DNA of 64,000 nt from Macrostomum lignano (taxonomy: Eukaryota): assembly GCA_002269645.1 (NCBI GenBank), contig NIVC01000232.1:133684-197683 (forward strand), read 5' to 3'. Below, piece after piece: positions 10,895-35,684 of the stretch (the first letter of the stretch is position 1; every line of letters starts with the position of its first letter). The notes below the pieces were generated by a model. That model was given only the letters and a program-made list of their open reading frames with translations. It made no database searches and had not been told where the DNA came from. Position numbers and translations under genes: made by a program.

Positions 10895-12601
10895 ATGGCT
10901 CTGAGAATCTTAGAGGAAACCAGAGCGGATATCATGGAGCAAGTAAAAAATGCTCTGGAGGCAACATCACTTCATGGCTTGCCCAGAGTAGCGTCAAACA
11001 AGCCGATCTATATCCGCATCCTGTGGCTGCTCCTGTTCCTGTTCATGCTTTCCCTGTTTCTTAAAGGCTTTATTGAGTTCATCAACAAGCTGCAATCTCA
11101 TCAGGTGACCACGTCCTTCGAAGCGAATTCGCTGCCATTCCAGTTTCCCGATGTCTACGCCTGCTACGAGAACGCTCTGTCTGGAAGCTATGCGTCGAAC
11201 GTTGACTCGAAATCGGCTCAGTTAATCAACGACAAGCTGCTCAATGCCAGTAGCGTTTTGAAGTCGTTTTTAATGCAGAGAAACTTATCTAGCACAGAAA
11301 TGTTGGCGAAAGAGCGCGAGTTGAGCTTCTTTTATCCGCAGTCGCTGCCTTTTAAACTACTGGTTGACTCGCTAAGCCACAGAATCGAACAGGGAGTTCT
11401 GAGCAGTGGAATTGTCTTCATGGAGAGCGGCGGCTCTCCGGACTACACTAACGTCCATGCCACGGTGTTCTATCATCCGCTTTACCTCCAGTGCTTCAAG
11501 TGGTCGTTGGATAGAGCTACGCAGAAAAAGTTGGCCAAAAGTGGTTTATCAACTGGACTCGCTGTGACACTTTTAATTGACGGGAACTCCACTGAGGTGA
11601 CTTCTGGAGGCACGAAAATTCTTCCGATGGTTTACACCGTTGGTGAAGAAGCTGCTCTACCTGTTTCGGACTGGACCATGCTGTCGAACGACTTTTTCGG
11701 ACCCGACCGAACTTCCGGCGTTCGAGTGTTCCTGACCCCTCCAGGAGAGTACCCGTCCGACTTTGTGAACTCGTTCTCGCTGAGCCCTGGTATGCATCAC
11801 AAAGTTGAAATTAGCATGACTCAGCAAGAGTACAAGGCGGGTCAGTTCAACTGTCGCGCGGAGACCCCCGCGGTCCAGTTCGTGAACCCATACGACCAGA
11901 CTCCTTACAATCACATCTACAGCTTTTCCTATTGCTACTACTACGAGTACCATAAACAGTTCCAAGCGCTCTTCAATCTATCTGGAGACGTTAGTCCTCT
12001 GCCCTGGCCATTGGTTGGGAAGAAGTATCTGCTTAATGTGACTGGCGAGCCAAACTTTTTAGCAATGAGCCTCGATCCGCTGTCCGACTTTAGCGCTGTT
12101 GAAGATGCTTACGAAGTTGCACAAGATAAATGTGGGTCACAGCGGCCCTGCACTACCCGGGACTACAAGGTGAGCATCTCAAGTTCCGATTGGCCTAGTC
12201 AGAGCTCTCTGATGCCTTTCATCCAAAGCACGGTCAGACAGGCCTGGTTGCGGGCCAAATCCAAAAACCAAAGCGTGCCAGCGCTTGACTTCCTATTGAC
12301 TGGGAACAGTTCTAGTGTGACCAGCTACGTGCGTCAAAACATGCTAAAGGTGAATTTTAAGCCGCGCAGCGCTTTGTCCGACAAAGTGACATTCTCCAAG
12401 GACTACGGTATTTCTAACTTCATCTCGGACGTTGGTGGAATCATGGGCATCTATTTGGGCATGTCGCTGCTCACACTGTGCGAGCTGATAGAGCTTTTCT
12501 ACGACTTGATCACGGCTTGGAACACTCAGAGACGACCGAAGACGGTTGAACCTGACAAAACAATGTGTAAAGAGCCGACTTTCGTGGAAAGCAGTCAGTG
12601 A
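10895..12601 (+). CDS. DEG/ENaC family sodium channel subunit, copy 1 (intronless, 568 aa)
   Basis: N-terminal TSLHGLPR (HG motif), TM1, FPDVYAC, GVRVFL..PPGEYP, DWPS, and TM2 ISDVGGIMGIYLGMSLLTLCEL. Confidence 0.95.
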   Translation: MALRILEETRADIMEQVKNALEATSLHGLPRVASNKPIYIRILWLLLFLFMLSLFLKGFIEFINKLQSHQVTTSFEANSLPFQFPDVYACYENALSGSYASNVDSKSAQLINDKLLNASSVLKSFLMQRNLSSTEMLAKERELSFFYPQSLPFKLLVDSLSHRIEQGVLSSGIVFMESGGSPDYTNVHATVFYHPLYLQCFKWSLDRATQKKLAKSGLSTGLAVTLLIDGNSTEVTSGGTKILPMVYTVGEEAALPVSDWTMLSNDFFGPDRTSGVRVFLTPPGEYPSDFVNSFSLSPGMHHKVEISMTQQEYKAGQFNCRAETPAVQFVNPYDQTPYNHIYSFSYCYYYEYHKQFQALFNLSGDVSPLPWPLVGKKYLLNVTGEPNFLAMSLDPLSDFSAVEDAYEVAQDKCGSQRPCTTRDYKVSISSSDWPSQSSLMPFIQSTVRQAWLRAKSKNQSVPALDFLLTGNSSSVTSYVRQNMLKVNFKPRSALSDKVTFSKDYGISNFISDVGGIMGIYLGMSLLTLCELIELFYDLITAWNTQRRPKTVEPDKTMCKEPTFVESSQ

Positions 12602-13307
12602 ATTACAGGCATGTTCTACTATTTCTCAAGCAAACACTAATTGAAAACAAAAAAATTTGAAATCGGACTGTGAATTTATCTTTCGAATCCGTGGTGTTCC
12701 TTGGTTTTACTATTTGCATTGATAATCTCATAGCTACATTTTCATATTTATGCAGATCATGCAGTCATGACTAAGCTCTTGTGCATAACATTTAATTGAG
12801 TCTATCGAATATTTACCATTGAATACATGTATACGAATTCTATAAATTATCAGACATAAAAAGATTACATACTCGTAGCTAGATACTTGCTTCATTTTCA
12901 GATCAAAATTCTAAAGGAGATAGGGCAAAACAATACAATTTCTATCTCGTTATAGAATTTTGCAGTAAAACAAATCTACAGTTAAAAATTGCTACGTGAT
13001 TAATTACTATACGCTCGTCCGCCTGCTTGCGAAAGCAAGTTGACTTATGAGCGCGTAGATAAAGCCTATGCAAACGGTGTGAGCTCACACAAAACCAATA
13101 TGAGTCTATGATTTGCGCAATGGTTCAGCAATACATGTACATTCCCACTGCAGCAGTCTGTCTAGTTTGATTACTAAGTCTGTCAACTTCCCGATACGCA
13201 ACCAATCGATATCAACCAGCGTATTTGAGTATATAACCAATTAACTGTCCAACACACAAGTTAGCCAGACGCTTTATCCTCCTAGGCTCGCAATATTACC
13301 GAACAAA

Positions 13308-14923
13308 ATGAAGCAGCAAGTAAAGGCGGCCTTAGAATCGACCTCGGCTCACGGTCTACCGAGAACCGTGAGCAGTAAACCGCTGCTCATCCGTCTAATA
13401 TGGGTGGCTTTATTTCTTCTCATGGCCGGCTGCTTTTTGCGAGGATTGTTTCTGTTTTCAATAAAGTTTGCTGCAAATCCGCAAACTAGCACTTTGGAAG
13501 CGAACAAAGTGGTGTTCCAGTTTCCCGATATTTACGCCTGTCACGAGACTCCTTTCTCTGCCAGCTACGCAGTCAATGTGGACAGGATTGCTGCAAATGC
13601 GATTAATTCAATAATGAACTCCACAACGCCATCCATACGGGAATACTTAGCAAAAAATATCTAAACGAGACAGACGAAAGCAAAACCATGCCGCCAAATA
13701 CATTCTTCTATGTATTCTCTCTACCATACTCGCTTATGGTCGACGCGCTGGCCCACAGGGCCGAGCAATCTGTCATCTCAAGTGGTGTCCTGTACAGGGA
13801 AAAACGTGGCACTCCCCACTACGAACATATTGAAGCGACCAGCTTCTTTCACCCGATTTACCTTCGGTGCTTCAAGTGGACCCTGGACAAAGAATTTCAG
13901 ACTGCTGTGTTGAAGTCCGGCTCGTGGGCCGGCATCACTGCAACGCTGCTCATCGACTCGAGCGCATCGGAGATCGAATCCAATGGCGCACCAATTCAGC
14001 GCATGGTGTACTCAAACTACAGCTTGCTCTCAGTCTGGGAGTGGTCTCTTTCGCTGCGCGACTACTTCGAGGCCGACAGGAGCGCCGGAATTCGAGTATT
14101 CCTCGCACCGCAAGGCGAATACCCGTCCGAGTTCGTGAGCTCGTTCGTCCTGGGTCCGGGAAAGCACCACACAGTCGAAATCGAGATGCTGCAGCAGGAG
14201 TACACAGCTGGCCAGTTCTCGTGTCGCGGTGACAGTCCCGCAGTGCAGTTTGTGAATCCGTACGATGACACTCCGTACAATCACACCTACAGCTATTCCT
14301 ACTGCTTCTACAAGTCATATCATGAAATCATTCAAAGATTGTATAATCTCTCGGGCGATATAGGACCTTTGCCATGGCCTCTTCGGGGTAAAAAATATGT
14401 CTTTAACCTGACTGGAGAGCCAAACTTTGCCAGTCTGAAGTTGAACCATTCTGACTATTCGACTATAGAAGACGCCATTGCTAATGTCGAGGAAAACTGC
14501 CAGTTGGATCGGCCGTGCAGCAGCCTTCAGTACCGCTCGAGTGTCTCCAGCGCTGACTGGCCCATAGACAGCTCCATCTTCTCCTTCATCAACAGCACGG
14601 TCAGGGAGGCCTGGACTCAAGCCAACGCCAGGAACCTCAGCGTGCCTGCTCTGGACTTTCTAATGACTGGAAACGATTCGGTTGTGTCATTGTATGTTCG
14701 CAAGAACCTGCTTAAAGTGCACTTTAAACCGTCGCAAACGCTAAGCGATAAAATTGTGTTCTCAAGGGACTATGGACTGGAGAACTTTGTTGCAGAAATT
14801 GGCGGCACTATGGGAATCTACCTGGGCATGTCGCTGCTCACCTTGTGCGAACTATTCGAACTAATTTACAATATTGTCGCTATCTACAAGTCGAAGAAGT
14901 CGCAGCAACAAGTTGAAAACTGA
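13308..14923 (+). CDS. DEG/ENaC subunit, copy 2 (one -1 frameshift in an A-run at ~13655)
   Basis: ORFs 13308-13664 and 13688-14923 join as LAKKYLNETDESKTMPP if one A is added to AAAAAA. All family motifs are present (SAHGLPR, FPDIYAC, AEIGGTMGIYLGMS). Confidence 0.9.
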
Positions 14924-15545
14924 GTAGGGCAATAATGTCACGAGGCAATAAAATACAATATTTGTATTTTCAAGTATTTTCAAAACGAATGTCGTCACTA
15001 TATTGATCATATGCCGGACTTCATCATTCATATTTTAATATTTCACAGGTAAAATTACGTAAGAGTAATTATAAAGACAAAACTTGCTAATCATTAAAAG
15101 TCACTCGTATAGAATTGTATTTCTGTAACATAAGTCAAAGTTTTGTTATTATTTGCCTCCTAACATTAATGGGAAATTTCGTTCGTGTTTTCTACCACTC
15201 ACGAACAGTGGCCAGTGCAATAAAGGTTTATCGCGTCCTTTTCAAGCCATAGTCCTGTGACATACGGCAGTTATGTTGCTAAGCAACGATTAGGCAAACA
15301 ATAGACGCTCCCGACAATAATTGAGAGATCGAGACAATGCTGGGATTAAGTGAAGAGGGAAATTGGCGTTCCTAATTTGGCACCGAGTGGGCATCGGTCG
15401 ATTGATTACTAACTCTAATGAGGCAAATTACTCACATCAGCCTCGCAGAGAGATACGAGTACAAAGCAAGCCAGTTCATCTGCTAATATATTTGAGTCAG
15501 GCATACTCTGAGCAACCTTGTCGCTAAAGACCCAGAACAGAAGGC

Positions 15546-17186
15546 ATGCATCACCTGAGAGCTGCTCTCGAGACCACTACGGCTCACGGCCTGTCGCGCC
15601 TTGTCACCGGCAAGCCCCTGTACGTGAGAGTCGCCTGGCTACTGCTGTTCTGCGTCACCATGGCGCTGTTTCTCCGCGGTTTCGTCGAGTTTGTTGGGAA
15701 GCTTCGATCCAATCCGGCAACAAACTCGCTGGAAGTGAACGGCGCCAGCTTCCAGTTTCCTGACGTGTACGTCTGCTTTGAAAATCCGATCTCGGGCAGC
15801 TATGCCGCTAATCTCCATCCACATTCAGCTGCCGAAATTAACAACCGAATCAATCGGACCTTTGATATACTGTCAGCATACAGCTTTGGATACGGTAACC
15901 AAGATTTGTTCATTAGAGGCTTTTCGTTTGTTCAGCCTCACTCTTTACCGTATCAACTGCTGGTGGATACTTTAGGAAAAAGGCATGAGCAGAGCATTTT
16001 AGTCGGCGGCATAGTTTACAAAGACTCGGCTGGAATGCCGCACTACCGTAAGTTGAATAGCAGTATATTCTATCACCCGATCCACCTGGGATGCGCCAAA
16101 TTCGTACTCAGTGGCGCCGAAGCCGAGCTTTTAGGAAGAAGCGGAGCCAATTCCGGACTGCTACTCAAAGTTCTACTCGATGAAAACTCCTCATATATAC
16201 CGGCGAACGGAGCGCCCATCAGAGACGCAGTGTATACGATGGAGTCTGCAATACCGGTCTCCGACTGGAGCCTCTCGTCCGGCGATCTCTTAGCCCCGGA
16301 CCGAGCATCGGGACTTCGAATCTACTTGGCACCTCCCGGCGAGTACCCGACCGACTTTGTGACCTCATTTTCACTCGGCCCGGGAAAGTATCACACCGTG
16401 GAGATTGACATGAAGCAGCAGGAGTACAAGGCTGGCCAGTTCGACTGCCTGAGCCCGATGCCGGATGTGCAGTTCTTGAATCCGTACCACCGGACGCCGT
16501 ACAATCATTCTTACAGCTACTCATACTGTTTCTACTATGAGTACCAAAGTCTCTACCAGAGAGCGCTGAACATGTCCGGGGATAAGACCCCGATGCCTTG
16601 GGAACTGAGACACAAAGATTACATGTTCAATGTCACTTCAACGCCGAATGTTCTTGATATTTACCCGAACTCAGAGTTAATGAATAATATTGACGATGTT
16701 CAACAGCATGCAACAAAAGCTTGCGAGTCCAAGCGACCCTGTAGCACTATTGAATACAGCGTGAGAATATCCAGCTCCGACTGGCCAACACAAGGATCGC
16801 TCACTGGATTCGTCAACAGCACAGTAGGAGCCGTGTGGCTCCAAGCAAAGATGTTTCACCTGGACGTGCCAGTGCTTGACTTTTTATTCAACGGTAGTGA
16901 CGTTGACGTGCTCACTTACCTGAGAAAGAATCTTCTTAAAGTGTTTTTCAAGCCGAAGAGTCTGCAATGCGACAAGGTCAGCTTTTCTAGAGACTACGGA
17001 GTGTCAAACTTCATATCGGACGTTGGCGGAATCATGGGCATCTACTTGGGAATGTCGATTCTGACTCTGTGCGAGGTTTTCGAACTAATCTACGATCTGA
17101 TTAGCTATTGCAACTCACAGCGCAAAGCAAAGAGTTCCACTTCGGTGGCAGCTTCGTCCGAGATGTCAGTCAAAACACTGCATTGA
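15546..17186 (+). CDS. DEG/ENaC subunit, copy 3 (546 aa, intact)
   Basis: TAHGLSR, FPDVYVCFEN, GLRIYLAPPGEYP, SDVGGIMGIYLGMS. Confidence 0.95.
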   Translation: MHHLRAALETTTAHGLSRLVTGKPLYVRVAWLLLFCVTMALFLRGFVEFVGKLRSNPATNSLEVNGASFQFPDVYVCFENPISGSYAANLHPHSAAEINNRINRTFDILSAYSFGYGNQDLFIRGFSFVQPHSLPYQLLVDTLGKRHEQSILVGGIVYKDSAGMPHYRKLNSSIFYHPIHLGCAKFVLSGAEAELLGRSGANSGLLLKVLLDENSSYIPANGAPIRDAVYTMESAIPVSDWSLSSGDLLAPDRASGLRIYLAPPGEYPTDFVTSFSLGPGKYHTVEIDMKQQEYKAGQFDCLSPMPDVQFLNPYHRTPYNHSYSYSYCFYYEYQSLYQRALNMSGDKTPMPWELRHKDYMFNVTSTPNVLDIYPNSELMNNIDDVQQHATKACESKRPCSTIEYSVRISSSDWPTQGSLTGFVNSTVGAVWLQAKMFHLDVPVLDFLFNGSDVDVLTYLRKNLLKVFFKPKSLQCDKVSFSRDYGVSNFISDVGGIMGIYLGMSILTLCEVFELIYDLISYCNSQRKAKSSTSVAASSEMSVKTLH

Positions 17187-18159
17187 AATGTCAATTGAAG
17201 AGACTCTGCTTTTAATTAATCAATTACCTCTGAAAATCAATGCGTCAATAATTCTCTTATAATCAAGATTCGTGTGCGCAGGAATTAATTTTTACGAAAA
17301 CTAAATTCAAAGCGTTTGTTCAGAAAATGTAACCAGTGGTTCGAACGAGTCTGTTGGAGTGCCCTTTAATTTCATTAATTCAAAAGTGCAAACTTATTCA
17401 GCCGTGGATACGTCGCTCTAATCATCACGGCTTGTTCCTAACTTTTCATGGGAATTAGGCGTCAAGTCACTTTACATGAAGTATCCCCAGTTTTTACTTG
17501 CATGTGAGCACTTCCTTGGGCACCGATATGTATTGTTGAAGTCTGGGTTATTTTGTGTCCTAAATGCGAACTCTACTAGATTGTTCGATTCCTTAATTTG
17601 CATCCCAGCGACTTCGCACACTTTTGTCTCGTTATTTCCTTTATGCAACGATTACTCTTCATTTAGGCCTTGCTATAATTAACTATTGCTGTAGCCTACA
17701 CTAAGCAACAGTATCAATTTTCTTAGAATGCTTTTCTAATACAGTAAATTTACTCTGCACCCTGTAATTCAGGTATTTTCCTTCTACATGCTAAAGCAAT
17801 TTCGATAAAAGACTATTTTTAGAGAACAGTTTGATTCACTCGTACATTGCAAGTTCCTCAGTAGCATACAAATGTTTAACAATGAAGATGCTTTCTACAT
17901 GTTTTTGACGACGATAATATAATATAACAAAGACCATAACGACAAAGACGATGTCCATGTTTTCAAATTAACCTTTCGACTCATTGGCTCATTGGACATT
18001 ATTTTGTCAACTAGCTCGTACAGCTAGTGACGACCTTTTCTAAAAGTGTTCTTTGTTACATTTATAAATTTGCTTAAGGGATGAGGGTTTACAGGAATCA
18101 TATCCGAGCTGGATAAACACTCAATAGATAGTTCATACTTTAATTTTACATGTTGCCAA

Positions 18160-18420
18160 ATGCAAGCTACCGTTGCAACAGCAGTCAGGTCACCGACATC
18201 ATACGGACTGTCGCTTGTTAGTCACCAGCACACCAGTTTTCGTGTGTTTGTTTTGCTCATTATTCATCTCGCAATGCTAGAATTATTTGCCAGGGCCCTC
18301 CGGGAGCTCTTGAGCAAACTAAAGTTAAATCCGACGACAACCTTCTTGTAACTGAGTAGTGCAACAAGTTCCAGTTTTCCCGATGTTCCTATGTACGCCT
18401 GCTTTGAAAATCTGCTTTAA
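18160..18420 (+). pseudogene. Truncated DEG/ENaC relic (N-terminus, TM1 and beta1 only)
   Basis: Translates as MQATVATAVRSPTSYGLSLV...ELFARALRELLSKLKLNPTTTFL*LSSATSSSFPDVPMYACFENLL*, colinear with the first ~85 aa of the other copies. HG is changed to YG, there is an internal stop, and homology ends at TTAA 18417-18420. Confidence 0.8.
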
Positions 18421-18837
18421 ATCCTATCGCATTCATGGTTAAAGGTACATACGTAGCCATGATTACCGGAGACAAGCTGATCTGAGACGCCGTAGGGCAC
18501 GGAGTACCTTTAACCTTATGATTACCAGTGGCATGCTGTGCATGCCATCGTTCATTCTGTCAATTGACCATAGACAGATTTGAAGTCGATGGGAAAGCGA
18601 GTTTAGACAGAATCATTGTCTGACTCAACCAAATGGAATGCTATGCATGCCAAGGCCAAAAAACTGTTTGTATTATCATACTGCGTCGGAGTGTCACAAA
18701 ACAAATAGAAAACGACATACATTGCATGCACAAAGGTAAATCTTGAGAACATAAGGGCAAATGAAGCTAGCTGCATGCAAGTGAATGAAAATAATTTTAG
18801 CAACAGTTCGATTACAGTTTCAGCAAAGCGCCAGCAA

Positions 18838-19300
18838 TCAGTTAGCCGAGTGCCACTCAAAGAAGCACGGCTCCAGGCAAAGCCCAGGCTGACCGTCACA
18901 GCCTTGGCAGAAGTAGACGGTCCGCTTTTTCAGTCTGCGCTGGTAACAAACTCGGCAACGCTTGGTAGGCCGTTATTGTGCTGCGGTAGCGGGTAGCTTT
19001 TCCAGCCGGTGATGAATGTCGCCTGGCTGACGGGGAAGAGCCTGACGCTTAACTCTCGATCGACCATTTCCGCTGCTTTCAATCAAGTGCTTTACACACC
19101 TTTCAGTGTAGCTGAGAAAGCTCATGGATCCACCTAGATGTCGGTACACAATCCAGGAGTTGCGAACCAGCTGCTGTAGCAGAAACACCGCCAACTTTAC
19201 GAACCATTTGTGCGTTCGGCGGCATGCGCTGTTAGGCTGGGCTGCGGCATCCATCCGATCCACACCTCCCATGTTGTGATTATATTGCTTTACGACCGAG
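18838..19300 (-). mobile_element. piggyBac transposase C-terminal relic
   Basis: The minus strand reads VKQYNHNMGGVDRMD...RRTHKWFVKL, then after one premature stop the Cys-rich domain RCRVCYQRRLKKRTVYFCQGCDGQPGLCLEPCFFEWH. Confidence 0.88.
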
Positions 19301-19660
19301 CCGAATGTCTCCTCGAAATCTATGAATAGACAATCAGGATCGTCTGGCGTATCGGCATCTCATCAATGACTCGGCGAAGAGCTAGGATCTGCGTCACTGT
19401 GCCGCAATGGGGCCAGAAGACGTTCTGCTCAGAGCGCAGGTTCGAATCCAGCACCGACTGCAACTGCGATTACAGCGCCCGATCAAACAGATTCGCAGCG
19501 GAAGATTGAAGGCAGATGCCTCGGTCCTCTTCTAGTAATGTGGTACCCCGCTTCTTTGGAATAGCAACGATGTGTCTCCGTCGGCAGCGTCAGATCGTCT
19601 GGTAGCGGGGGGATGTCAGCGCGTTAACAATGGCGTCGAAGTCAATAATCTGAGGTAGAG
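19300..19660 (-). mobile_element. Decayed RTE-type reverse transcriptase fragment (N-terminal RT motifs)
   Basis: The minus strand reads IVAIPKKRG...RGICLQSSAANLFDRAL*...LRSEQNVF...VTQILALRRVIDE...IDFEETFGSV, matching the LINE RT pattern IPKK/RGI.L/EQ.GF/QI.ALRR/FIDF..AFDSV, with stops and a frameshift. Confidence 0.72.
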
Positions 19661-20454: not shown

Positions 20455-22116
20455 ATGAAGCAGCTGTTTCGATCAGCGCTGGAGTCCAGCAGCGCTCATG
20501 GACTGCCGAGAACCGTCAGCAGCGAGAAACCACTGTTTGTCAGGCTGATCTGGTTGGCTCTGTTCTCCTTCATGCTTGTCTTGTTTTTAAACAGCCTAGT
20601 TCGATTCACTGAGAAACTCATCGCGAATCCGCAAACCAGCTCGATTGAGGCGAACTCCGTCACCTTCCAGTTTCCGGATATTTACGCCTGCCATGAAACT
20701 CCCGTGTCGGCCAGCTACGCGGTAAATGTAGACAAGAAGATGGCACTGGAGATCAACTCTCTATTAAGTAATACAACAAGGAAAATTCGACAATTTTTTA
20801 CAACTAGAAATCAGTCTGGTAGGGACGAAAACATTCGGCCGGTTACATTCGTTTACGTGCATTCGCTTCCCTACTCGCTTCTGGTTGACGCGCTGGCCCA
20901 CAGGGCCGAGCAATCTGTCATCTCAAGTGGCGTCCTGTATAGAGGAAAACGCAGCACTCCCCAGTACAAACATATTGAAGCGACCAGCTTCTTTCATCCC
21001 ACGTACCTTCGGTGCTCGAAGTGGACCCTGGACAAAGACTGGCAGAAAACCGTGTTGAAGTCCGGCTCGTGGGCCGGCATCACTGCAACGCTGCTCATCG
21101 ACTCGAGCGCATCGGAGATCGAATCCAATGGCGCGCCAATTCAGCGCATGGTGTACTCAAACTACAGCTTGCTCTCAGTCTGGGAGTGGTCTCTATCAAT
21201 GCGTGACATCTTTGAGCCAGACAGGAGCGCCGGAATTCGAGTATTCCTCGCACCGCAAGGCGAATACCCGTCCGAGTTCGTGAGCTCGTTCGTCCTGGGT
21301 CCGGGAAAGCACCACACAGTCGAAATCGAGATGCTGCAGCAGGAGTACACAGCTGGCCAGTTCTCGTGTCGCGGTGACAGTCCCGCCGTGCAGTTTGTGA
21401 ATCCGTACGATGACACTCCGTACAATCACACCTACAGCTATTCCTACTGCTACTACGCGTTGTATAACAAAGGTCTTCAAGAAACGCTTAACATGTCCGG
21501 AGGGATCGGTCCTCTGCCGTGGCCTTTGAGAGGGAAGAACCATGCATTCAATTTTACCGGCGAGCCCAGCCTGGCAGACACGTCCGCGGCTGAGGTGAAT
21601 CCCGACTTTTTTACTGAACTGCTTGACAATATCGATAAATACTGTCAGCTGCAACGTCCGTGCACCAGCCAGCAGTACAAGGCGAGCATCACCAGTGCCA
21701 AATGGCCAACTCAAAGCTCGCTTGCTTCCTTCATCAACAGCTCGGTGAAGCAGACCTGGACTCAAGCCAAGGCCAGGAACCTCAGTGTACCTGCGCTAGA
21801 CTTTCTGATGACAGGAAACGCATCCAGTGTCGCTTCGTTTATTCAAGAGAATGTTTTGAAAGTGCAGTTTAAGCCGCTTGCTGTACTCTGCAATAAAGTG
21901 GTGTTCTCAAGGGAATACGGCTTGGAAAACTTTGTATCGGATATCGGAGGCGTCATGGGAATTTACCTGGGCATGTCACTACTAACTCTTTGCGAACTGC
22001 TTGAGCTGCTGTACGACACTCTTGCTTGGTGCACTTCAAAGAGTAGACATTCCGCGAATGCAGTTGGGAGTCATGTCGCCTCCTCGAAAGCTACGTCTGT
22101 TGTAGAGATAAGCTGA
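20455..22116 (+). CDS. DEG/ENaC subunit, copy 4 (553 aa, intact; closest to copy 2)
   Basis: SAHGLPR, FPDIYACHE, SDIGGVMGIYLGMS. Near-identical central block shared with copy 2. Confidence 0.95.
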   Translation: MKQLFRSALESSSAHGLPRTVSSEKPLFVRLIWLALFSFMLVLFLNSLVRFTEKLIANPQTSSIEANSVTFQFPDIYACHETPVSASYAVNVDKKMALEINSLLSNTTRKIRQFFTTRNQSGRDENIRPVTFVYVHSLPYSLLVDALAHRAEQSVISSGVLYRGKRSTPQYKHIEATSFFHPTYLRCSKWTLDKDWQKTVLKSGSWAGITATLLIDSSASEIESNGAPIQRMVYSNYSLLSVWEWSLSMRDIFEPDRSAGIRVFLAPQGEYPSEFVSSFVLGPGKHHTVEIEMLQQEYTAGQFSCRGDSPAVQFVNPYDDTPYNHTYSYSYCYYALYNKGLQETLNMSGGIGPLPWPLRGKNHAFNFTGEPSLADTSAAEVNPDFFTELLDNIDKYCQLQRPCTSQQYKASITSAKWPTQSSLASFINSSVKQTWTQAKARNLSVPALDFLMTGNASSVASFIQENVLKVQFKPLAVLCNKVVFSREYGLENFVSDIGGVMGIYLGMSLLTLCELLELLYDTLAWCTSKSRHSANAVGSHVASSKATSVVEIS

Positions 22117-24635: not shown

Positions 24636-25250
24636 ATTTTTATTAGGAAATTATAGCAGAACGTTTAAACAAAAAAGCTATCTATGTGTCAGAGAATTAG
24701 TGTCCGTTATATACTCTCGTACGTTGTTTTGATTGTAAACGCGTAAAATTTAGGCTTGTATTTTATACTGATAAGAACTTTAGTAATGTAATTTTAAAAA
24801 CAAAAAAATCAATAGAAATTCTATTTTAAAGAATTTGAAGCGATTCAAGGTGTCGCATATTTAACGTTTTATACACTATAGTCTCTAGTTAGTTTCACTT
24901 TAGCTTACCTGTCAATCATCTGCCTACTGTGTATTAAGTAGAAGTGTATATAAAAGCGTATTGCAAAAATTAGCAGCTCATGTTGACATAGATTTGAGAA
25001 TCAAAGTCCATTTGCTTTGCCAACATTGCGCTAGCAGTTTAAAATTCGCTAAAACTTTGCTATGACACCTCAGTGCAGATAGCTGTTTGCTCGGCTTATG
25101 CAAACAGAAGATAGGTAAATGAGTCAGCAAATTCTGATATTTGCATCACAAAGCAAACGTAAATGGGATTATTAAATAGACCAAAAACCGTTAGAGAAGC
25201 TAAAGTTAAACCAGCTTGTGTTTCACGAACAGCCTTGGAGAGGCCACAGC

Positions 25251-26888
25251 ATGCAGAAGTTGCAACTAGCGCTCACTCAGTCCACATCTCACGGACTGCC
25301 TAGAGTGGTCTCAAACAAGCCCGTCTACGTGAGAATAGCCTGGCTGTTACTCTTTCTGCTCATGTTTAGCCTCTTCCTAAAGAGCTTCTTCGACTTTGTC
25401 AACAAACTTAAATCTCAGTTGGTGACGTCTTCTATTGAATCGCGGAGCGAGAAGTTCCAGCTCCCGGATGTGTACGCTTGCTTTGAGAATCCTGTGTCTG
25501 GAAGCTATTCCGGTAACATTGGTGGCAGCACCGCCAGAGCCATCAATGACAGCTTCAATAGTCTAGATGAAGAGCTAAGGAACATTAAAGTTAAACACGG
25601 ATTTACTCAGAAGCAGCTGCAAGCGCTTGTCATGCAAAACAGTTTCGCCTACGTGTTTAGTCTGCCCTACAAACTGCTATTCGACAGTCTGACTCACCGA
25701 GTCGAGCAGAGCGTCATATCTAGCAGTGTCAGCTTCATCAGCGCCAACGGAGAGCTGAGACGAGCTGAATTGGAAGCCAATGAGTTCAACCATCCGCAGT
25801 ACCTTCGCTGTCTGCAGTGGGCCATCAACAGCACCTGGCAGGAGAAAATTATCTCAGACGAGTCGTGGGCCGGACTCACGGTCACTTTGCTTCTAGATAA
25901 CAACTCGTCCTTCGTAAAGTCAGGAGGATACCCGATTCCGCTGAAGGCTTTTCGACAAGACGGCACAGGCGTACCAGTCTCTGACTGGACTATGTCAGAG
26001 AAAGGTTACTCAGAAGCTGACAGAGTGGCAGGGCTGAGGGTGTTTTTGAGTCCAGCTGGAGAGTACCCGTCGGATTTTGTGAACTCATTCGTTTTAAGTC
26101 CAGGAAAATTCCACTTGATCAAGATAGAACAGATTCGGAACGTACTCGCCGAAAATCAGTTCGATTGTGTTAAAAGCCGGCACGAAGTTCAGTTCGCCAA
26201 CCCGTACGATCTCTCAAAGTACAGTCACTCGTACAGCTACTCCTACTGCTACTACTATGAGTACCACAAGCTTTTCCAGCAGTTCTTCAATCTGTCTGGC
26301 GAAATAAGTCCACTTCCGTGGCCTCTAAGAAGTAGGAAGTATCTATACAACTTTTCTAGTTCACCAAATTACATGGATTTGGATCCGTCTGTGTTGATCA
26401 ATCAGGCAACCATTACAGAAAAGGTTCGACAAACCTGTTTGACAAAACAGCCTTGCAGCACACTGGACTACAGCACCAGCATCTCTGGCGCTGACTGGCC
26501 TACTCAGAGCTCCCTTGCTTCCTTCATCAACAGCTCAGTGAGACAGGCCTGGACTCGAGCGAATTCCAGGAACCTCAGTGTACCTGCGCTTGACTTTCTG
26601 ATGAATGGGAAGGCATCCGATGTGGCCGCATATGCTCGAGAAAACCTGTTGAAGGTGCACTTTAAACCTAAGAGCATTAGAAGTGACAAGATAACTTTCT
26701 CCATTGACTACGGTGTTTCTAACTTTGTATCGGATGTTGGCGGCATCATGGGGATCTATTTGGGCATGTCGCTGCTGACTCTTTGCGAACTGCTAGAGCT
26801 GCTGTTCGACCTTGCTGCCTGGAGTTACTCAAAGAGCGATAAATTCAAGTCGGCTTCGGAAGAAACTGATCCTGAGACAGCGACTTGA
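25251..26888 (+). CDS. DEG/ENaC subunit, copy 6 (intact; ATG at 25251)
   Basis: TSHGLPR, LPDVYACFEN, SDVGGIMGIYLGMS. The ORF track starts at an upstream GTG (25218). Confidence 0.95.
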   Translation: MQKLQLALTQSTSHGLPRVVSNKPVYVRIAWLLLFLLMFSLFLKSFFDFVNKLKSQLVTSSIESRSEKFQLPDVYACFENPVSGSYSGNIGGSTARAINDSFNSLDEELRNIKVKHGFTQKQLQALVMQNSFAYVFSLPYKLLFDSLTHRVEQSVISSSVSFISANGELRRAELEANEFNHPQYLRCLQWAINSTWQEKIISDESWAGLTVTLLLDNNSSFVKSGGYPIPLKAFRQDGTGVPVSDWTMSEKGYSEADRVAGLRVFLSPAGEYPSDFVNSFVLSPGKFHLIKIEQIRNVLAENQFDCVKSRHEVQFANPYDLSKYSHSYSYSYCYYYEYHKLFQQFFNLSGEISPLPWPLRSRKYLYNFSSSPNYMDLDPSVLINQATITEKVRQTCLTKQPCSTLDYSTSISGADWPTQSSLASFINSSVRQAWTRANSRNLSVPALDFLMNGKASDVAAYARENLLKVHFKPKSIRSDKITFSIDYGVSNFVSDVGGIMGIYLGMSLLTLCELLELLFDLAAWSYSKSDKFKSASEETDPETAT

Positions 26889-28171: not shown

Positions 28172-31100
28172 ATGCAGCAGGTTAAGCTCGCCCTAACTCA
28201 AACGACTGCTCACGGACTGCCAAGAGTTCTCTCAAGCAAGCCAATCTATGTTAGAGTGGCTTGGCTACTTCTGTTCCTGCTCATGTTTGGTTTGTTTCTA
28301 GAGAGCTTCTGCAAGTTTGTCACTAAGCTGAGGTCCCGAAAAGTGACGAGTTCAATCGAATGGGAAGGCGAGAAGTTCCAGTTCCCGGATGTGTACATGT
28401 GCTTTGAGAATCCAGTGTCGGGCAGCTACTCCAGTTTCATGGACAGCGACACTGTGGTGGCAATCAATGATAGCTTTAGCCAATGCGTGGCCCAGCTGAA
28501 GCAGTTTGCGAATAAGCATAATTTCAGCGACGAATACACGGATCAAATAATCGCTAGTAGCAGCTTAATGTTTTTACAAGGTCTACCATACAAGTTGCTA
28601 TTCGACAAGCTGGCTCACAGAGTCGAACAAAGCGTCATTTCAAGCAGCATAATGTATCTACACGAAACTGGACTGCCAACTTCTGTTTCAGTAGAAACCA
28701 AGGCATTCAACCATCCGCTGTATCTTCGCTGCCTAAAGTGGACTATCAACAGTACACTGCAAGATAAAGTGACCGCGTCCGAGTACTGGGCGGGACTCAC
28801 TGTTACTCTGCTATTGGACACAAACTCGTCCTTTGTAAAACCTAGCCGTAGTCATCTTTCTTCGTGGAAAACCGGCTTCCCAGACGGCACAGAGATCCCA
28901 GTGTCCGACTGGCTGCTGTCAGTGAACGGCTTTGCAGAACCGGACAGATTGGCTGCAGTGAAGCTTTTTCTAAGCCCACCTGGCGACTATCCGTCTGAAT
29001 TTGTGAGCTCCTTCTCGCTGAGTCCTGGGAAATATCACACCGTCGAAATTGAAATGGTTAGAAAGGGGATGTCAACTTAAGCACCAGAATGGAGCCCGAA
29101 GTTCAGCTCCGGCCCAAACCGACTGCAATCGATAACTTGTCGGCCCAGACGACTAGAATCGCCGAGACATCCCATCCGGCTCCCTTCCTTGGGGTCCCAG
29201 GGGATAAAGGGGATAAAATGGGGATCTCATGTCAACTTAAGGCTCTGGAATGGAGCCCGAAGTTCAGCTCCGGACCAAACCGACTGCAATCGATAACTTG
29301 TCGGCCCAGACGACTAGAATCGCCGAGACATCCCATCCGGCTCCCTTCCTTGGGGTCCCAGGGGATAAAGGGGATAAAATGGGGATCTCATGTCAACTTA
29401 AGGCTCTGGAATGGAGCCCGAAGTTCAGCTCCGGCCCAAACCGACTGCAATCGATAACTTGTCGGCCCAGACGACTAGAATCGCCGAGACATCCCATCCG
29501 GCTCCCTTCCTTGGGGTCCCAGGGGATAAAGGGGATAAAATGGGGATCTCATGTCAACTTAAGGCTCTGGAATGGAGCCCGAAGTTCAGCTCCGGCCCAA
29601 ACCGACTGCAATCGATAACTTGTCGGCCCAGACGACTAGAATCGCCGAGACATCCCATCCGGCTCCCTTCCTTGGGCTGACTGAAACTCCTCTCGCTGGC
29701 CCCTAAACTGTTGCTCAGTAGGCTTTCGCTGCTGTGGTAAAGCGTTTTCTCTAGCATAAAGTCTGGCAACAAGGCTGCGTGGAAGAGCGAAATCAACAAA
29801 GCGAAGGCCGGCACCAGACCTTCGATAGCTACATATGTATCTTGGTGGTAAGCGTAGCAGCCCAGGAGTTTGAGCACTGCCATTACGCTCGTACATGACA
29901 ATCGCAGCCTGCAGTCCTACTTCCTGCTTTTGCTGACGAGTAGAAGCCAGGAAGAAGTTGCAATCCTGGATCTCTAAAACCAAAGCGATTGTCCGCTGCT
30001 GTCACACACTCTAAGAATCACGCGGTAGGATTTTGAATTATGGCGCGAGAAAACGACAGCTAGAAAAATCAAGACGGATGCCACCGACCGAATCGGTTGC
30101 TCCAGTTTTCTAGCGGCGTCGCTTGCCGAAACTTCCAACACTCCCGGCGGCTTGGATGTGTAACTCAAAGTCTCTCCAGGAGTCACCTTCGTAGCTATCG
30201 AGAACCTCCTTGACACGAATGTTTTGAATGTAATAATCGGCTTGATTTAGTTGATACGGATCCACCGAAACCTCTGACAAATTCACTGTGTGAATTCGGG
30301 GGAACCCCGAGCTTTTTGGATCCAGCGGGTTGACAGCAATCCATGCCCTTGTGTTAGCAGGGGGGCACGCTTCAGATCACAGTTGAAGTGCAGCTGCTCA
30401 ATTTCGTCAAGTTCGTTGGACAAGAGCACTCGGCGCATGAAATTCTGCCCGAATTCGAACAACGATAGCCCTGTCCATGACGGTGGAGCTGTTTAAATGA
30501 TTCAAAACCTGGATGCGCCCGGTTGTACTTTGCCATCGAGGTCTCGATAACAACGTCTAATCGGCAGGGCTCACTGAAGCCGGCTGACGGCAGCCACTGA
30601 TACGGTTTGTGCCTCTCGTTAAAACATTTGTCCTGCTTAATGGCAGCAAAGCAGCACATAGCGGAACATAGTGGCACAGCGGATGTCTCGGCGATTCTAG
30701 TCGTCTGGGCCGACAAGTTATCGATTTCAGTCGGTTTGGGCCGGAGCTGAACTTCGGGCTCCATTCCAGAGCCTTAAGTTGACATGAGATCCCCATTTTA
30801 TCCCCTTTATCCCCTGGGACCCCAAGGAAGGGAGCCGGATGGGATGTCTCGGCGATTCTAGTCGTCTGGGCCGACAAGTTATCGATTGCAGTCGGTTTGG
30901 GCCGGAGCTGAACTTCGGGCTCCATTCCAGAGCCTTAAGTTGACATGAGATCCCCATTTTATCCCCTTTATCCCCTGGGACCCCAAGGAAGGGAGCCGGA
31001 TGGGATGTCTCGGCGATTCTAGTCGTCTGGGCCGACAAGTTATCGATTGCAGTCGGTTTGGTCCGGAGCTGAACTTCGGGCTCCATTCCAGAGCCTTAAG

Positions 31101-32222
31101 TTGACATGAGATCCCCATTTTATCCCCTTTATCCCCTGGGACCCCAAGGAAGGGAGCCGGATGGGATGTCTCGGCGATTCTAGTCGTCTGGGCCGACAAG
31201 TTATCGATTGCAGTCGGTTTGGGCCGGAGCTGAACTTCGGGCTCCATTCCAGAGCCTTAAGTTGACATGAGATCCCCATTTTATCCCCTTTATCCCCTGG
31301 GACCCCAAGGAAGGGAGCCGGATGGGATGTCTCGGCGATTCTAGTCGTCTGGGCCGACAAGTTATCGATTGCAGTCGGTTTGGTCCGGAGCTGAACTTCG
31401 GGCTCCATTCTGGTGCTTAAGTTGACATCCCCTTTATTCACAGAGAACCAGTTTGACTGTCTGCCCCAACTGTCCGAAGTTCATTTTACGAATCCTTACG
31501 ACCTGTCTGCGCACAGCCATGCGTACAGTTATTCTTACTGCTACTACTATGAGTACCATCGGCAGTTTCAATCGACTTACAATATCTCTGGCTTAATAAA
31601 CCCTCTACCATGGCAACTAAGGAATCGTAACTATTTGTATAATTGTTCGGCTACGATAAACTATTTGACGATGGATGTCAAAAACGGTTCCCTTTCAGCA
31701 GCGATCCAGAGTGTGTCAGGCAATGTTCGGACTGCATGCAAAGGAAAACGACTTTGCAGCACACTGGACTACAGTGCCAGCATCTCCAGTGCCGACTGGC
31801 CGACTCAAAGCTCTCTGAATTCGTTTATCAGTTTCTCTGTGAGGCAGGCCTGGTCAAGAGCCAAGGCCAGAAACCTTAGCGTACCTGCGCTCGACTTTCT
31901 CATGACTGGCAACGCATCGAGTGTTGCCACCTATGTTCGCGACAACTTGCTTAAAGTTCACATTAAACCAGGTTGCGTTATGTGCAATAAGATCACGTTT
32001 TCTATTGACTATGACTTCTCAAGTTTCGTCTCAGAGGTAGGCGGCATCATGGGGATTTATCTGGGCATGTCGCTGCTGACTCTGTGCGAACTGCTCGAGC
32101 TGCTTCACGACATTATTGTATGGTATTGTAAAAGGGTCGATCGGGTGTCTTCTGAGGAGCGAGATTCTGATGGCAAAACTTCTGCATCATCCGTATCTGT
32201 TGTTGAAATCGACATGGACTGA
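28172..32222 (+). pseudogene. DEG/ENaC copy 7, interrupted by a 2368-bp transposon. Coding halves 28172-29064 and 31433-32222
   Basis: Removing 29065-31432 restores ATG GTT AGA AA|T TTA TTC ACA GAG = MVRNLFTENQFDC, colinear with paralogs (MIRSAFKEDQFDC). Both halves are otherwise stop-free. Confidence 0.92.
29065..31432. mobile_element. Non-autonomous foldback DNA transposon with modular 161-bp-repeat TIRs, inserted at AAA|TTT with no TSD (Spy-like)
   Basis: Termini GGGGATGTCAACTTAAGCACCAGAATGGAGCCC... and its reverse complement. Left arm 29065-29676 (~4 units), right arm 30681-31432 (~5 units), ~1 kb unique core. Flanks AGAAA and TTTATT rejoin in frame. Confidence 0.85.
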
Positions 32223-32486
32223 CGGCCAAATACGAGCGTTCCTTCGATTTAAAAAATCGAAGATATACATTCAACTAATACTACTTCTTTTGAAGCGAAA
32301 AATACAAATTAGATTGATGCATTGCAATTTTATGAAATTGCTCATGGTTTCAAACTCGCATTACGCAACAGAGAAAAAATTTCGAGCAGCTTTTAACTTT
32401 TTTTTGCTCACACGTTATGGAGACTAGGTTTCATGAAGTAAGATATCTGTAAAGTTTAAGGTTTGTGTGGTTTTGAGTATGTGAAT

Positions 32487-33053
32487 TTTAGGGTTTGTGA
32501 ATCTAGTGGTTTGTGAATCTAGTGGTTTGTGAAGTCTAGGGTTTGTGAAGTCTAGGGTTTGTGAAGAATAGGGTTTGTGAAGAATAGGGTTTGGTAAGTC
32601 TAGGGTTTGTGATGTCTATGGTTTGTGAAGAATAGGGTTTGTTAAGTCTAGGGTTTGTGAAGAATAGGGTTTGTGAAGGCTTGGGTTTGTGAAGTCTAGG
32701 GTTTGTGAAGAATATGGTTTGTGAAGTCTAGGGTTTGTAAAGTCTAGGGTTTGTGAAGTCTAGGGTTTGTGAAGAATAGGGTTTGTGAAGAATAGGGTTT
32801 GTTAAGTCTAGGGTTTGTAAAGTCTAGGGTTTGTGAAGAATAGGGTTTGTGAAGTCTACGGTTCGTGAAGTCTAGGGTTTGTGAAGAATAGGGTTTGTGA
32901 AGGCTTGGGTTTGTGAAGTCTAGGGTTTGTGAAGAATAGGGTTTGTGAAGTCTACGGTTCGTGAAGTCTAGGGTTTGTGAAGAATAGGGTTTGTGAAGGC
33001 TTGGGTTTGTGAAGGCTAGGGTTTGTGAAGTCTAGGGTTTGTGAAGTTTAGGG
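32487..33053. repeat. 16-bp minisatellite TAGGGTTTGTGAAG(TC/AA), telomere-like core
   Basis: Direct tandem units, with TTTAGGG at both array ends. Confidence 0.93.
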
Positions 33054-33109
33054 CCGTGCCATCTATCGCCCATCTCCTCACAAAAACAGGCCCTCTCAAA
33101 AAACCAAGA

Positions 33110-33340
33110 GATTGGGACGCCCACCAAGAGACAGGGGCGCCCACCATGAGACAGGGACGCCCACCAAGAGACAGGGACGCGCGCCCACCAAGAGACAGGG
33201 GTGCCCACCAAGAGACAGGGGCGCCCACCAGAGACAGGGGCGCCCACCAAGAGACAGGGGCGCCCACCAAGAGCTGTCAAACAAAAGGCAGGGATGCCCA
33301 ACAAGAGACTGAGCCGCTCACCATAAAGAGACAGGGTCGC
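33110..33340. repeat. ~20-bp minisatellite GGGCGCCCACCAAGAGACAG
   Basis: About ten imperfect tandem units. Confidence 0.85.
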
Positions 33341-33920
33341 CCATCTGTCTTTAATCTTCGCCCTACAAACTTTTAGAAGATTCAATAAAACAAGATAAGA
33401 AAGCTTTAGATTCTTGAGGTCTGAAGACTATAATTTAATATAATGTTGAGAAAATACAGCTATGAAGTTTCATGTAACCAGGAATAATGTCGACTGCGAT
33501 TCCCTCAGAAAAAAATTCAAACAGGTGTTTTATTGCAATCTTTTTTGTTGACACGCGTGTTAATTATTATAGCTCATGATTAGTGAGTCCATAGCCAGAC
33601 ATATCAGGCTCTTAAAGTGTAACATTGATGCTTTACATAAGCAGCTAATTGGGAAAGGTTTCTGCATTATCATAAAGCAAACAAGGGCGAAATTAATTAA
33701 ACTGGCTCATAGGAAAAAAGTAAATTTGTTCTTATCAATTACATGGCTCATGGATTGGATCAAGCTTGATTGCCTGCCCAACTTGAATGAGTTATGGTCT
33801 GGCGTTTATTAGTTCTATCTAGAGCAGCAAGCAAATAATCGAAGTCGTTGGAACTGTGTCCACACACACGGAGAGTTGACACAGTGGATAGAAAACTAGA
33901 CGTAAAAATCCCATGACTGC

Positions 33921-35684
33921 ATGGTTGAGAGGAACTCGCAGCAGACGCAATATAACTGCATTAGTGTAGCCCTTGAAAAACTGAACACGACAGACGACAT
34001 GCAACAGCTAAAGAGTGCTTTGAGCTCTACGACGTCACATGGACTGCCTAGAATTGTCTCGAACAGGCCTGTCTATGTCAGGGTTGCCTGGCTTCTTCTG
34101 TTTCTGCTCATGTTCAGCCTGTTTCTCAAGAGCTTCTCCGAGTTTGTCATCAAGCTGAAATCGCATAAAGTGACCAGCTCTATTGAATCGGAGAGCGAGA
34201 AGTTTCAATTCCCGGACCTGTACATGTGTTTTGAAAACCCGTTCTCTGCCAGCTACTCGGGAAATATTGATCTCAGCACTGCGGCAGCTATCAATTATAC
34301 ATTTAACCGCTGGGAGAGTCAGTATCGAGCTTTATTAGAATACTTTAATATAACTGGACCAGATGCGGCAGAAAAAGTCCGGGACTATAGTCTGCTGGCC
34401 CTGCAAGGTCTGCCCTACAAGCTGCTTTTCGACAAGTTCGCTCACAGAGTCGAACAGAGCGTCATCGAAAGCAACATTATCTACATTCAGGAAAATGGAA
34501 CTCCAGGTTCCGCAGCCATAAAATCTACTGAGTTCAATCATCCGATGTACCTCCGGTGTCTCCAATGGACCATTAACAGTACCTGGCAGGGGAAAATGAC
34601 AACAGCTGAGTCTTGGGCGGGACTTACAGTCACCATTCTGTTGGACACTAATTCGTCTTTATTGGAGTCTGCAGGTTATCCACCGATCCCAAGGACTTAT
34701 TTCAAAGGCGGCACGGAGATCCCAGTATCTGACTGGCTCTTGTCGATGAATGGCTACACACAGGCGGACAGAGTCACTGGACTAAAGGTGTTCTTGAGCC
34801 CGCCTGGCGAGTACCCGTCCGACTTTGTGAGTTCATTCTCATTGGGACCTGGAAAATTTCACTCTGTGGAGATCGAAATGATTCGAAGTGCTTTCAAAGA
34901 GGATCAGTTCGACTGTCTTACCAAGCAACCTGAAGTTGAGTTTACGAATCCTTACGATCTGTCTGCGTACAGCCATGCGTACAGTTATTCTTACTGCTAC
35001 TACTATGAGTACCATAAGCAAGCGCAACAGCTTTACAACCTATCCGGCAACATTAACCCGTTACCGTGGCCTCTGAGGCATAAGAAATACTTTTACAACG
35101 TAACAAATACACCAAATTGTTTTACATACTATTTTTTGGGAAAATTTTACGAAGAGGATCCTAATTTTTCGGATAAAATCCGAATTGCCTGCAAAGGGAG
35201 GCGACTTTGCGAAGCAACGGATTACAGTGCCAGCATCTCCAGCGCTGACTGGCCTACACAGAGCTCTCTGTCTGCTTTCATCAACACCTCAGTGAGGCAT
35301 GCGTGGGCAACAGCAAAGTCCAGGAACCTCAGCGTACCTGCACTCGACTTTCTCATGACTGGCAACGCATCGAGCGTAGCCTCGTATGTGCAGAGCAACC
35401 TTCTCAAAGTCTATTTCAAGCCAAGATGCCTGATGTGCAACAGAATCTTTTTCTCTATTGACTACGGATTCTTGAATTTTGTCTCAGAGGTAGGCGGCGT
35501 GATGGGCATCTACTTGGGCATGTCGCTGCTGACACTGTGCGAGCTGCTTGAGCTGCTCTACAGCATTATTGCCAGCCGTTATTGTGCGAAAGGCGACAAT
35601 GCTTCGTTAGAAAAAGCTCGGGAACAAACCAACGATAGAACCGTAATGCAGTCGTCATCGAGTTCTACTGTTTTACCGGCTTAG
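33921..35684 (+). CDS. DEG/ENaC subunit, copy 8 (intact; alternative ATG at 33999)
   Basis: TSHGLPR, FPDLYMCFEN, GLKVFLSPPGEYP, SEVGGVMGIYLGMS. Confidence 0.95.
   Translation: MVERNSQQTQYNCISVALEKLNTTDDMQQLKSALSSTTSHGLPRIVSNRPVYVRVAWLLLFLLMFSLFLKSFSEFVIKLKSHKVTSSIESESEKFQFPDLYMCFENPFSASYSGNIDLSTAAAINYTFNRWESQYRALLEYFNITGPDAAEKVRDYSLLALQGLPYKLLFDKFAHRVEQSVIESNIIYIQENGTPGSAAIKSTEFNHPMYLRCLQWTINSTWQGKMTTAESWAGLTVTILLDTNSSLLESAGYPPIPRTYFKGGTEIPVSDWLLSMNGYTQADRVTGLKVFLSPPGEYPSDFVSSFSLGPGKFHSVEIEMIRSAFKEDQFDCLTKQPEVEFTNPYDLSAYSHAYSYSYCYYYEYHKQAQQLYNLSGNINPLPWPLRHKKYFYNVTNTPNCFTYYFLGKFYEEDPNFSDKIRIACKGRRLCEATDYSASISSADWPTQSSLSAFINTSVRHAWATAKSRNLSVPALDFLMTGNASSVASYVQSNLLKVYFKPRCLMCNRIFFSIDYGFLNFVSEVGGVMGIYLGMSLLTLCELLELLYSIIASRYCAKGDNASLEKAREQTNDRTVMQSSSSSTVLPA

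Follow-up and report, generated by a model that had tools for sequence, protein, structure and literature searches.

A tandem array of old, cysteine-depleted DEG/ENaC channel genes in the flatworm Macrostomum lignano

The stretch of DNA analyzed here (hereafter the window) comprises 64,000 nucleotides of contig NIVC01000232.1 from the flatworm Macrostomum lignano. Between 10.9 and 35.7 kb it carries eight genes of the DEG/ENaC channel superfamily (here called c1 to c8), all on the plus strand, as found by open reading frame (ORF) listing, Pfam scans, and tblastn. Every copy matches the Pfam profile ASC (PF00858) with E values from 1e-15 to 1e-45. The six intact copies (c1, c3, c4, c5, c6, and c8) extend from profile position 2 or 3 to position 455 of 455 (E 1e-35 to 1e-45), and the partial matches of c2 and of the two halves of c7 all exceed the 23.6-bit cut-off. 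Because each intact ORF covers essentially the entire ASC profile, the coding regions are intronless. The intact ORFs comprise 545-568 codons when counted from a conserved methionine; if the first in-frame methionine is taken instead, they reach up to 587 codons. The gene starts are typically spaced 2.2-2.9 kb apart; c7 and c8 are separated by 5.8 kb because of an insertion in c7. The original prediction is borne out, including all of its positions (Table 1): six copies of the tandem array are intact, one is frameshifted, one is disrupted by an insertion, and a relic survives as well. A search for 9-mers present in at least four copies revealed no upstream motif shared among the eight, and canonical poly(A) signals are located downstream of only three of them.

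Table 1. Features of the DEG/ENaC array (positions refer to the window; aa, amino acids; HMM, hidden Markov model; NJ, neighbor-joining; pS, synonymous differences)
Feature	Position	Strand	Evidence
c1, intact single-exon gene, 568 aa, conserved Met at 10934	10895..12601	+	ASC E 2.3e-45, profile 2-455
c2, full-length, 1-nt frameshift in A6 run at 13652-13657	13308..14923	+	frame 3 to frame 2
Approximate gene-conversion tract in c2 (partner in c4, ~20869-21456)	13724..14311	+	pS and nucleotide identity
c3, intact, 546 aa, earliest-branching array copy	15546..17186	+	ASC E 9.8e-39; NJ bootstrap 91
Relic: N-terminus, first transmembrane helix, and the motif following it only; stop codons	18160..18420	+	family HMM E 2.6e-4
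piggyBac-type transposase, C-terminal fragment	18973..19272	-	weak DDE_Tnp_1_7 match, E 0.017
c4, intact, 553 aa	20455..22116	+	ASC E 3.4e-35
c5, intact, 561 aa	22950..24635	+	ASC E 4.8e-42
c6, intact, 545 aa from conserved ATG; ORF opens at 25218	25251..26888	+	ASC E 1.3e-35
c7, 5' half (N-terminus to beta9)	28172..29064	+	ASC profile 3-261, E 1.7e-15
Foldback-type insertion within c7	29065..31432	.	615-nt perfect inverted arms
c7, 3' half (thumb to C-terminus)	31433..32222	+	ASC profile 291-455, E 3.6e-17
c8, intact, 561 aa from conserved ATG; ORF opens at 33921	33999..35684	+	ASC E 5.1e-37

The identity of the encoded proteins as channels is well supported. An AlphaFold2 model of c1 reached a predicted local distance difference test score (pLDDT) of 92.5 and a predicted TM-score (pTM) of 0.85 when built on an 84-sequence alignment (a seven-sequence alignment gave a pLDDT of 40.6). 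The model contains two transmembrane (TM) helices, with a break of TM2 at G-M-S, as well as palm, finger, thumb, and knuckle elements. In a Foldseek search with this model, Malacoceros FaNaC1 ranked first (8on9, E 1.9e-24), followed by human ASIC1a and Aplysia FaNaC, at sequence identities of 17-20%. The TM-scores of the top 50 matches range from 0.40 to 0.63 under either length normalization, and the top matches have a probability of 1.00. When c1 is compared with solved structures by sequence, the FaNaCs are again the best matches (7yvb, E 9.7e-13; 8on7, E 2.6e-12), and ASICs come next. All eight copies preserve the pore and gate landmarks with little or no change, namely HG (HGLPR), FPDVxxC (FPDVYAC), G-M-S, and the TM2 glutamate. 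The Deg position is occupied by serine (alanine in c2) and the amiloride-site position by glycine (G518). The WP motif after beta10 (DWPS/DWPT) had been proposed to place the array on the ENaC/FaNaC/degenerin branch. However, 81 out of 84 diverse DEG/ENaCs contain it, which makes it the default of the superfamily rather than the marker of a branch.

ASICs share the fold with the array and are its second-best structural matches, and the residues of the Deg site, the amiloride site, and the G-x-S filter can be aligned between the two. With c1 as a single-sequence query, ASIC chains show significant similarity only over the segment from beta11 to TM2 (residues 462-541). At the position where the array has WPS or WPT, chicken ASIC1 presumably carries IPS. 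DEG/ENaC ectodomains are usually cysteine-rich, with about 14 conserved cysteines and seven disulfides in ASIC1. In the array only six extracellular cysteines are conserved (residues 90, 200, 320, 347, 413, and 419), which by position are equivalent to three of the seven ASIC disulfides (C90-C200, C320-C419, and C347-C413). The ASIC thumb disulfide ladder is lacking and only its two basal pairs are kept. The window copies contain 6-9 extracellular cysteines in total and the M. lignano clade to which they belong 6-10, whereas 61 other representatives have a median of 14 (range 10-20). The depletion is a derived loss inside the DEG/ENaC superfamily and no ground for excluding the array from it. 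The ectodomains furthermore carry 7-11 N-glycosylation sequons each. In vertebrate ENaC, paired furin sites flank an inhibitory tract in the finger/GRIP region. The array lacks this arrangement, and solved ENaC chains match c1 with E values of 0.1-6. Conserved ENaC-type furin sites were not found in the eight copies: R-x-[KR]-R is lacking in six of them, and the single occurrence in c2 and in c4 falls inside a tract of gene conversion between these two genes.

An exhaustive profile search recovered 2208 DEG/ENaCs at E <=0.001, only 20 of which reached E <=1e-30, and the top seven matches are all M. lignano proteins. In an NJ tree the eight copies form a clade with one of these proteins, P0001, at a bootstrap of 85. 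Within this clade c3 branches first, the node uniting all other copies with P0001 has a bootstrap of 91, and c5-c8 form a subclade with a bootstrap of 100. Addition of a second protein, P0002, yields a clade with a bootstrap of 100, and a wider clade whose named members all come from M. lignano is recovered at 97. A sister clade of unlabeled sequences from public read assemblies joins at 77. The tree was built without a functionally labeled FaNaC, and automated names such as 'degenerin deg-1-like' and 'unc-105-like' are uninformative as labels. P0001, which is 52% identical to c1, was considered as an ortholog from another species. This was rejected as the flanks of the window are those of M. 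lignano; P0001 is thus a dispersed paralog at another locus, which nests within the array clade. A metagenome scan for relatives found none. The sister clade (P0008-P0020 and P0029, for example L006 from run DRR639838) comprises about ten or more DEG/ENaCs that share a GLYLGMS motif in TM2 and have a SVPAW motif and 10-12 extracellular cysteines.

The array appears to lie, as originally proposed, outside any characterized subfamily, its solved relatives being distant and its nearest sequences uncharacterized M. lignano proteins. The designation as a new family, on the other hand, does not hold, because published trees have already noted a flatworm radiation of which the array is a subclade, with some flatworm DEG/ENaCs forming separate, highly divergent clusters (bioRxiv 10.1101/2022.06.28.497943). 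The array belongs to a cysteine-depleted clade of DEG/ENaCs that has so far been found in Macrostomum only. Three other M. lignano channels have been tested in oocytes by Dandamudi et al. 2022 (PMC9234716), in which no agonist was found. These channels (Mlig049925.g2, Mlig051885.g1, and Mlig041003.g1) belong to the same superfamily and species as the array, but to other clades, and have GLW-G-[IM]-S in TM2 where the array has GIYLGMS. Their best local matches are P0138/P0083, P0048 (99%), and P0037/P0026, and neither the array nor P0001-P0007. As all three map to other clades, no member of the array clade is among the channels tested.

Pairwise synonymous and nonsynonymous estimates (Nei-Gojobori) show that the array is old. 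For every pair except c2/c4, synonymous differences are saturated (pS 0.66-0.85), while nonsynonymous differences (pN) amount to 0.19-0.39, and dN/dS is 0.11-0.27 where it can be computed. The saturated pS and the low dN/dS thus indicate ancient duplications and genes under purifying selection. Six ORFs of 545-568 codons have stayed open despite saturated synonymous sites, which requires long-term purifying selection, and this is the strongest argument that the intact copies are probably functional. The exceptional pair, c2 and c4, is 70% identical at the amino acid level, and a recent duplication was considered as its origin. The similarity is confined to a tract of about 600 nt, where pS is 0.03-0.38 (versus 0.66-0.85 outside) and nucleotide identity reaches 82-100% (versus about 50-70% outside). 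Because low pS is limited to this tract and the flanks are saturated, a recent duplication was rejected in favor of gene conversion between the two nonadjacent genes.

Three of the nine units are damaged. With one A added to its homopolymer, c2 reads through as a single ORF of 538 codons that contains no further stop codon. Homopolymers are a classic site of sequencing error and of real slippage alike, so that these two origins of the frameshift are indistinguishable here. The insertion in c7 is 2368 bp long. Tandem units of 161 bp make up its two 615-nt arms, whose sequences are 100% complementary. When it is removed, the reading frame is restored with the normal seven-residue spacing of the family. 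A target-site duplication could not be defined at any plausible boundary, the 1.1-kb core of the insertion has no Pfam match, and a second copy of the core was found neither in the window nor in the fetched loci. The core (29677-30820) contains several open segments of 70-130 codons in different frames of the minus strand, resembling a decayed gene. The paralog P0002 (L001 10001-11547, NIVC01004250.1) shows one intron-like gap of about 50 nt at approximately residues 290-296 (c1 numbering), close to the codon at which c7 is interrupted (approximately residue 305), which is probably a coincidence. The relic, of about 90 codons, was detected with the family HMM in the six-frame translation (profile positions 3-60, with a weak additional match at 67-81). 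It reads MQATV..YGLS..FPDVPMYACFENLL, with stop codons and with HG changed to YG. The piggyBac-type match just downstream of the relic is below the curated cut-off and serves as a lead only. As c2 and c7 each have one lesion in otherwise open frames and the arms in c7 are perfectly identical, both losses look recent. The proposed active birth-and-death of the array therefore stands for the deaths, but not for births, given the saturated pS of the duplicates and the conversion between c2 and c4.

The eight copies are conserved very unevenly along their length. Mean pairwise identity is 0.58-0.74 in the TM segments (0.74 in TM2) and 0.54-0.63 in the palm strands. High values are likewise seen in the knuckle (0.64), in beta7-beta9 (0.63), and in the first half of the thumb including alpha4 (0.59). 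Identity drops to 0.37 in the finger (mainly alpha1-alpha2), 0.34 in the beta6-beta7 loop, and 0.20 in the thumb loop and alpha5 (residues 381-412). Length differences among the copies are minimal, with few gap columns. The finger and thumb had been described as hypervariable in both sequence and length. This is correct for sequence but not for length, and in the thumb it applies to the loop and alpha5 only, as alpha4 and the first half are conserved. The peptide pocket of FaNaC1 consists of alpha1-alpha3 of the finger and the beta6-beta7 loop, together with alpha6 from the neighboring subunit (PMC11026163). As the variable segments of the array match the walls of this pocket and the conserved alpha6 would serve as its static wall, the pattern fits a diversification of ligand sites.

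Taken together, the locus is likely a long-standing tandem array whose genes encode subunits of trimeric DEG/ENaC channels of the amiloride type that conduct cations (probably Na+), and in which a diversified corner of the ectodomain would tune gating. The paralogs would assemble into homo- or heterotrimers, and the outer upper corner of each subunit (finger alpha1-alpha2, the long beta6-beta7 loop, and thumb alpha5), which differs between paralogs, may tune each channel to a separate extracellular stimulus. This stimulus would most likely be a chemical ligand (a small molecule or a peptide) and not protons or protease cleavage. Such paralog-specific chemical gating is speculative, and a chemosensory or peptide-gated role is suggested by analogy. 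One could go a step further and regard the array as a Macrostomum-specific, cysteine-depleted class of ligand-gated receptors, in which each paralog or heterotrimer would detect a different extracellular chemical (an environmental cue, a mating-related cue, or an endogenous peptide) through the diversified corner; this is unlikely.

Several points weigh against the interpretation as tuned channels. The finger is the most divergent region across all DEG/ENaCs (PMC11026163), which makes the pattern of variability weak evidence for ligand diversification. Site-wise tests of positive selection are precluded by the saturation of dS. Trimer assembly, cation (probably Na+) selectivity, and amiloride block are expectations from conserved motifs. 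The M. lignano DEG/ENaCs of other clades tested in oocytes did not respond to peptides (PMC9234716). Moreover, a word-indexed search with c1 returned nothing closer than P0001 from a protein collection that includes the transcript-based NCBI gene set of M. lignano, and an exact match to any intact copy was not found in this collection. The latter is expected as the window differs by 1.4-6% from a public contig of the same region. The same type of search with a 32-sequence alignment returned P0001 only and missed even members of the query alignment, so its silence is no proof that the array is unannotated.

A possible, though not probable, explanation is that the genes encode constitutive or mechanically or osmotically regulated Na+ channels of epithelia or neurons, with paralogs that differ by tissue or partner and not by ligand. 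In favor of this, many DEG/ENaCs are leak or mechanosensitive channels, the pore and gate motifs of the array are canonical, and M. lignano inhabits intertidal sand, where salinity changes. However, the paired furin sites and the inhibitory tract of ENaC are lacking, a degenerin-type extra cysteine-rich domain is not present in this cysteine-poor clade, and variability is concentrated at the corner that is accessible to ligands.

An unlikely alternative is that of environmental chemoreceptors for taste- or pheromone-like stimuli, comparable to insect PPKs or the ENaC clusters of spider mites. The closest genomic precedent of the array, with divergent, lineage-specific, and mostly intronless clusters, is indeed the ENaC expansion in the mite Tetranychus urticae (PMC5203786). 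It consists of 106 divergent lineage-specific genes, 92.5% of which are intronless, arranged in clusters with near-full-length pseudogenes and transposable element insertions, and the genomic pattern of the array resembles it. Single-lesion pseudogenes and variable exposed loops are present here as well. On the other hand, short branches in the mite indicate recent bursts, whereas the flatworm array comprises only eight copies, is old and stable, and shows no recent duplication, although fast turnover is typical of chemoreceptor arrays. Values of dN/dS stay low across the array. The mite expansion belongs to a different phylum and has an independent origin, and the mite ENaCs are themselves candidate chemoreceptors, their role having been proposed by analogy (PMC5203786). 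Insect PPKs are likewise a lineage-specific DEG/ENaC radiation, some members of which have been implicated in taste, pheromone detection, and mechanosensation and for which heteromers have been proposed. They are specific to insects, however; the solved PPK26 is a distant match to c1 (E 2.3e-6), and no phylogenetic link to the array was seen.

It is quite unlikely that the array encodes FaNaC/WaNaC-type channels gated by neuropeptides, with a different flatworm peptide for each copy, even though FaNaCs are the best matches among solved proteins in both sequence and structure. FaNaCs (Aplysia, 7yvb; Malacoceros FaNaC1, 8on7-8ona) share the superfamily and the fold with the array, as well as WP after beta10, the G-x-S filter, and a basic residue in beta7 (R288 in Aplysia), which is R or K in all copies, and the walls of their peptide pocket correspond to the variable finger and beta6-beta7 loop of the array. 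However, although activation by peptides requires R288, a basic residue at this position is widespread among DEG/ENaCs and hence not diagnostic of FaNaCs. The glycine in beta9 that is required for gating by FMRFamide (Aplysia G316) is replaced by glutamate in seven copies (E305 in c1) and by lysine in c6. Three conserved disulfides contrast with about seven in FaNaCs, the beta6-beta7 loop is much longer (about 48 residues in the c1 model), and sequence identity is low. In the NJ tree the array clade groups with M. lignano sequences (bootstrap 97) and not with lophotrochozoan FaNaC-like representatives. Finally, M. lignano channels that are closer to FaNaC did not respond to FMRFamide, YMRFamide, or Wamides in oocytes.

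That the cluster consists of dead or dying, unexpressed genes is highly improbable: three of nine units are damaged, a counterpart of c1 closer than P0001 was not found in the protein collection with its transcript-based M. lignano set, and shared upstream motifs and most canonical poly(A) signals are lacking, but six ORFs have remained open at low dN/dS despite saturated synonymous sites, and the full-length damaged copies have one lesion each, with identical arms in c7 that argue for recent damage.

The surroundings of the array place its lack of introns in context. From 37.8 to 58.1 kb the window is colinear with a part of the M. lignano contig NIVC01000105.1 (locus L005) at 94-98.6% identity, and both have the same order of WD40, caspase, and glutaminyl-cyclase (M28) genes. 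Locus L005 ends about 2 kb short of c8. By these matches the window comes from M. lignano, where it would be a different haplotype, homeolog, or line than the contig, or else from a very close relative. The flanking TTC16, ABCA, QPCT, and WD40 genes were thought to contain introns, as opposed to the array. The glutaminyl-cyclase gene is clearly split in both the window and the public contig, the public gene call for WD40 covers a stretch of DNA much longer than 436 residues require, and the ABC-transporter region consists of several separate ORFs. The caspase gene (45976-47460, minus strand), however, is a single ORF of 494 codons without an intron. The caspase has a long N-terminal extension, is 99% identical to M. 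lignano BOX15_Mlig032996g1, and has best non-Macrostomum matches of about 30%, which are caspase-8-like. Among the dispersed paralogs of the array, P0004 is intronless, P0002 and P0005 contain approximately 50-90 nt of intron sequence, and P0003 has more. Because P0004 and the neighboring caspase are intronless too and the introns of other paralogs are short, intron poverty is not peculiar to the array, as had been supposed, but a trait of the clade that is partly genome-wide.

The window also contains several mobile and repetitive elements. An intact Tc1/mariner transposase ORF of 399 aa (48391-49590, minus strand; HTH_Tnp_Tc3_2, Sleeping-Beauty-type helix-turn-helix, and DDE_3 domains) lies within about 2.8 kb that are missing from the colinear contig (L005 7664/7679 versus window 50951/48169), and this insertion looks recent or polymorphic. 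At 36166-36653 there is a 17-bp satellite (AGCACCAAGGGGCGCCA, about 29 copies), which seemingly recurs in inverted orientation at 62423-63303, about 26 kb away, judging by identical repeat peptides (APLGAWRPLVLGAPWCL) on opposite strands. Between the two satellite arrays lie the QPCT, caspase, and WD40 genes. Directly after the first of them, a GC-rich segment (36706-37575, plus strand; about 60% GC) encodes a fragment of a reverse transcriptase of the non-LTR type (RVT_1, E 1.7e-6), of which only the C-terminal part is present. Between c7 and c8 (32448-33273) a 16-bp tandem array (TGTGAAGTCTAGGGTT, 38 copies) is followed by a 20-bp array, with a strong local GC skew. Around the WD40 gene (54359-57339) long, coding-like repeats of short units, of the LSRAV type on the minus strand and of the DPAFS type on the plus strand, coincide with a strong negative GC skew.

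Receptors for peptides, protons, salts, and pheromones have arisen repeatedly among DEG/ENaCs, and most lineage-specific clades are without a known activator. Divergent flatworm DEG/ENaC clusters and intronless clusters in spider mites have been described before, and the array thus overturns no current view. It does provide a compact set of six intact paralogs maintained by selection in a genetically tractable flatworm, for which transgenesis and RNA interference are established, and as these genes are intronless they can be cloned straight from genomic DNA. The loss of most thumb disulfides offers a natural experiment that shows how far the fold depends on an ASIC-type thumb scaffold. If the paralogs did form a ligand-gated class, they would constitute a third independently evolved ligand-gated branch beside FaNaC/WaNaC and HyNaC.

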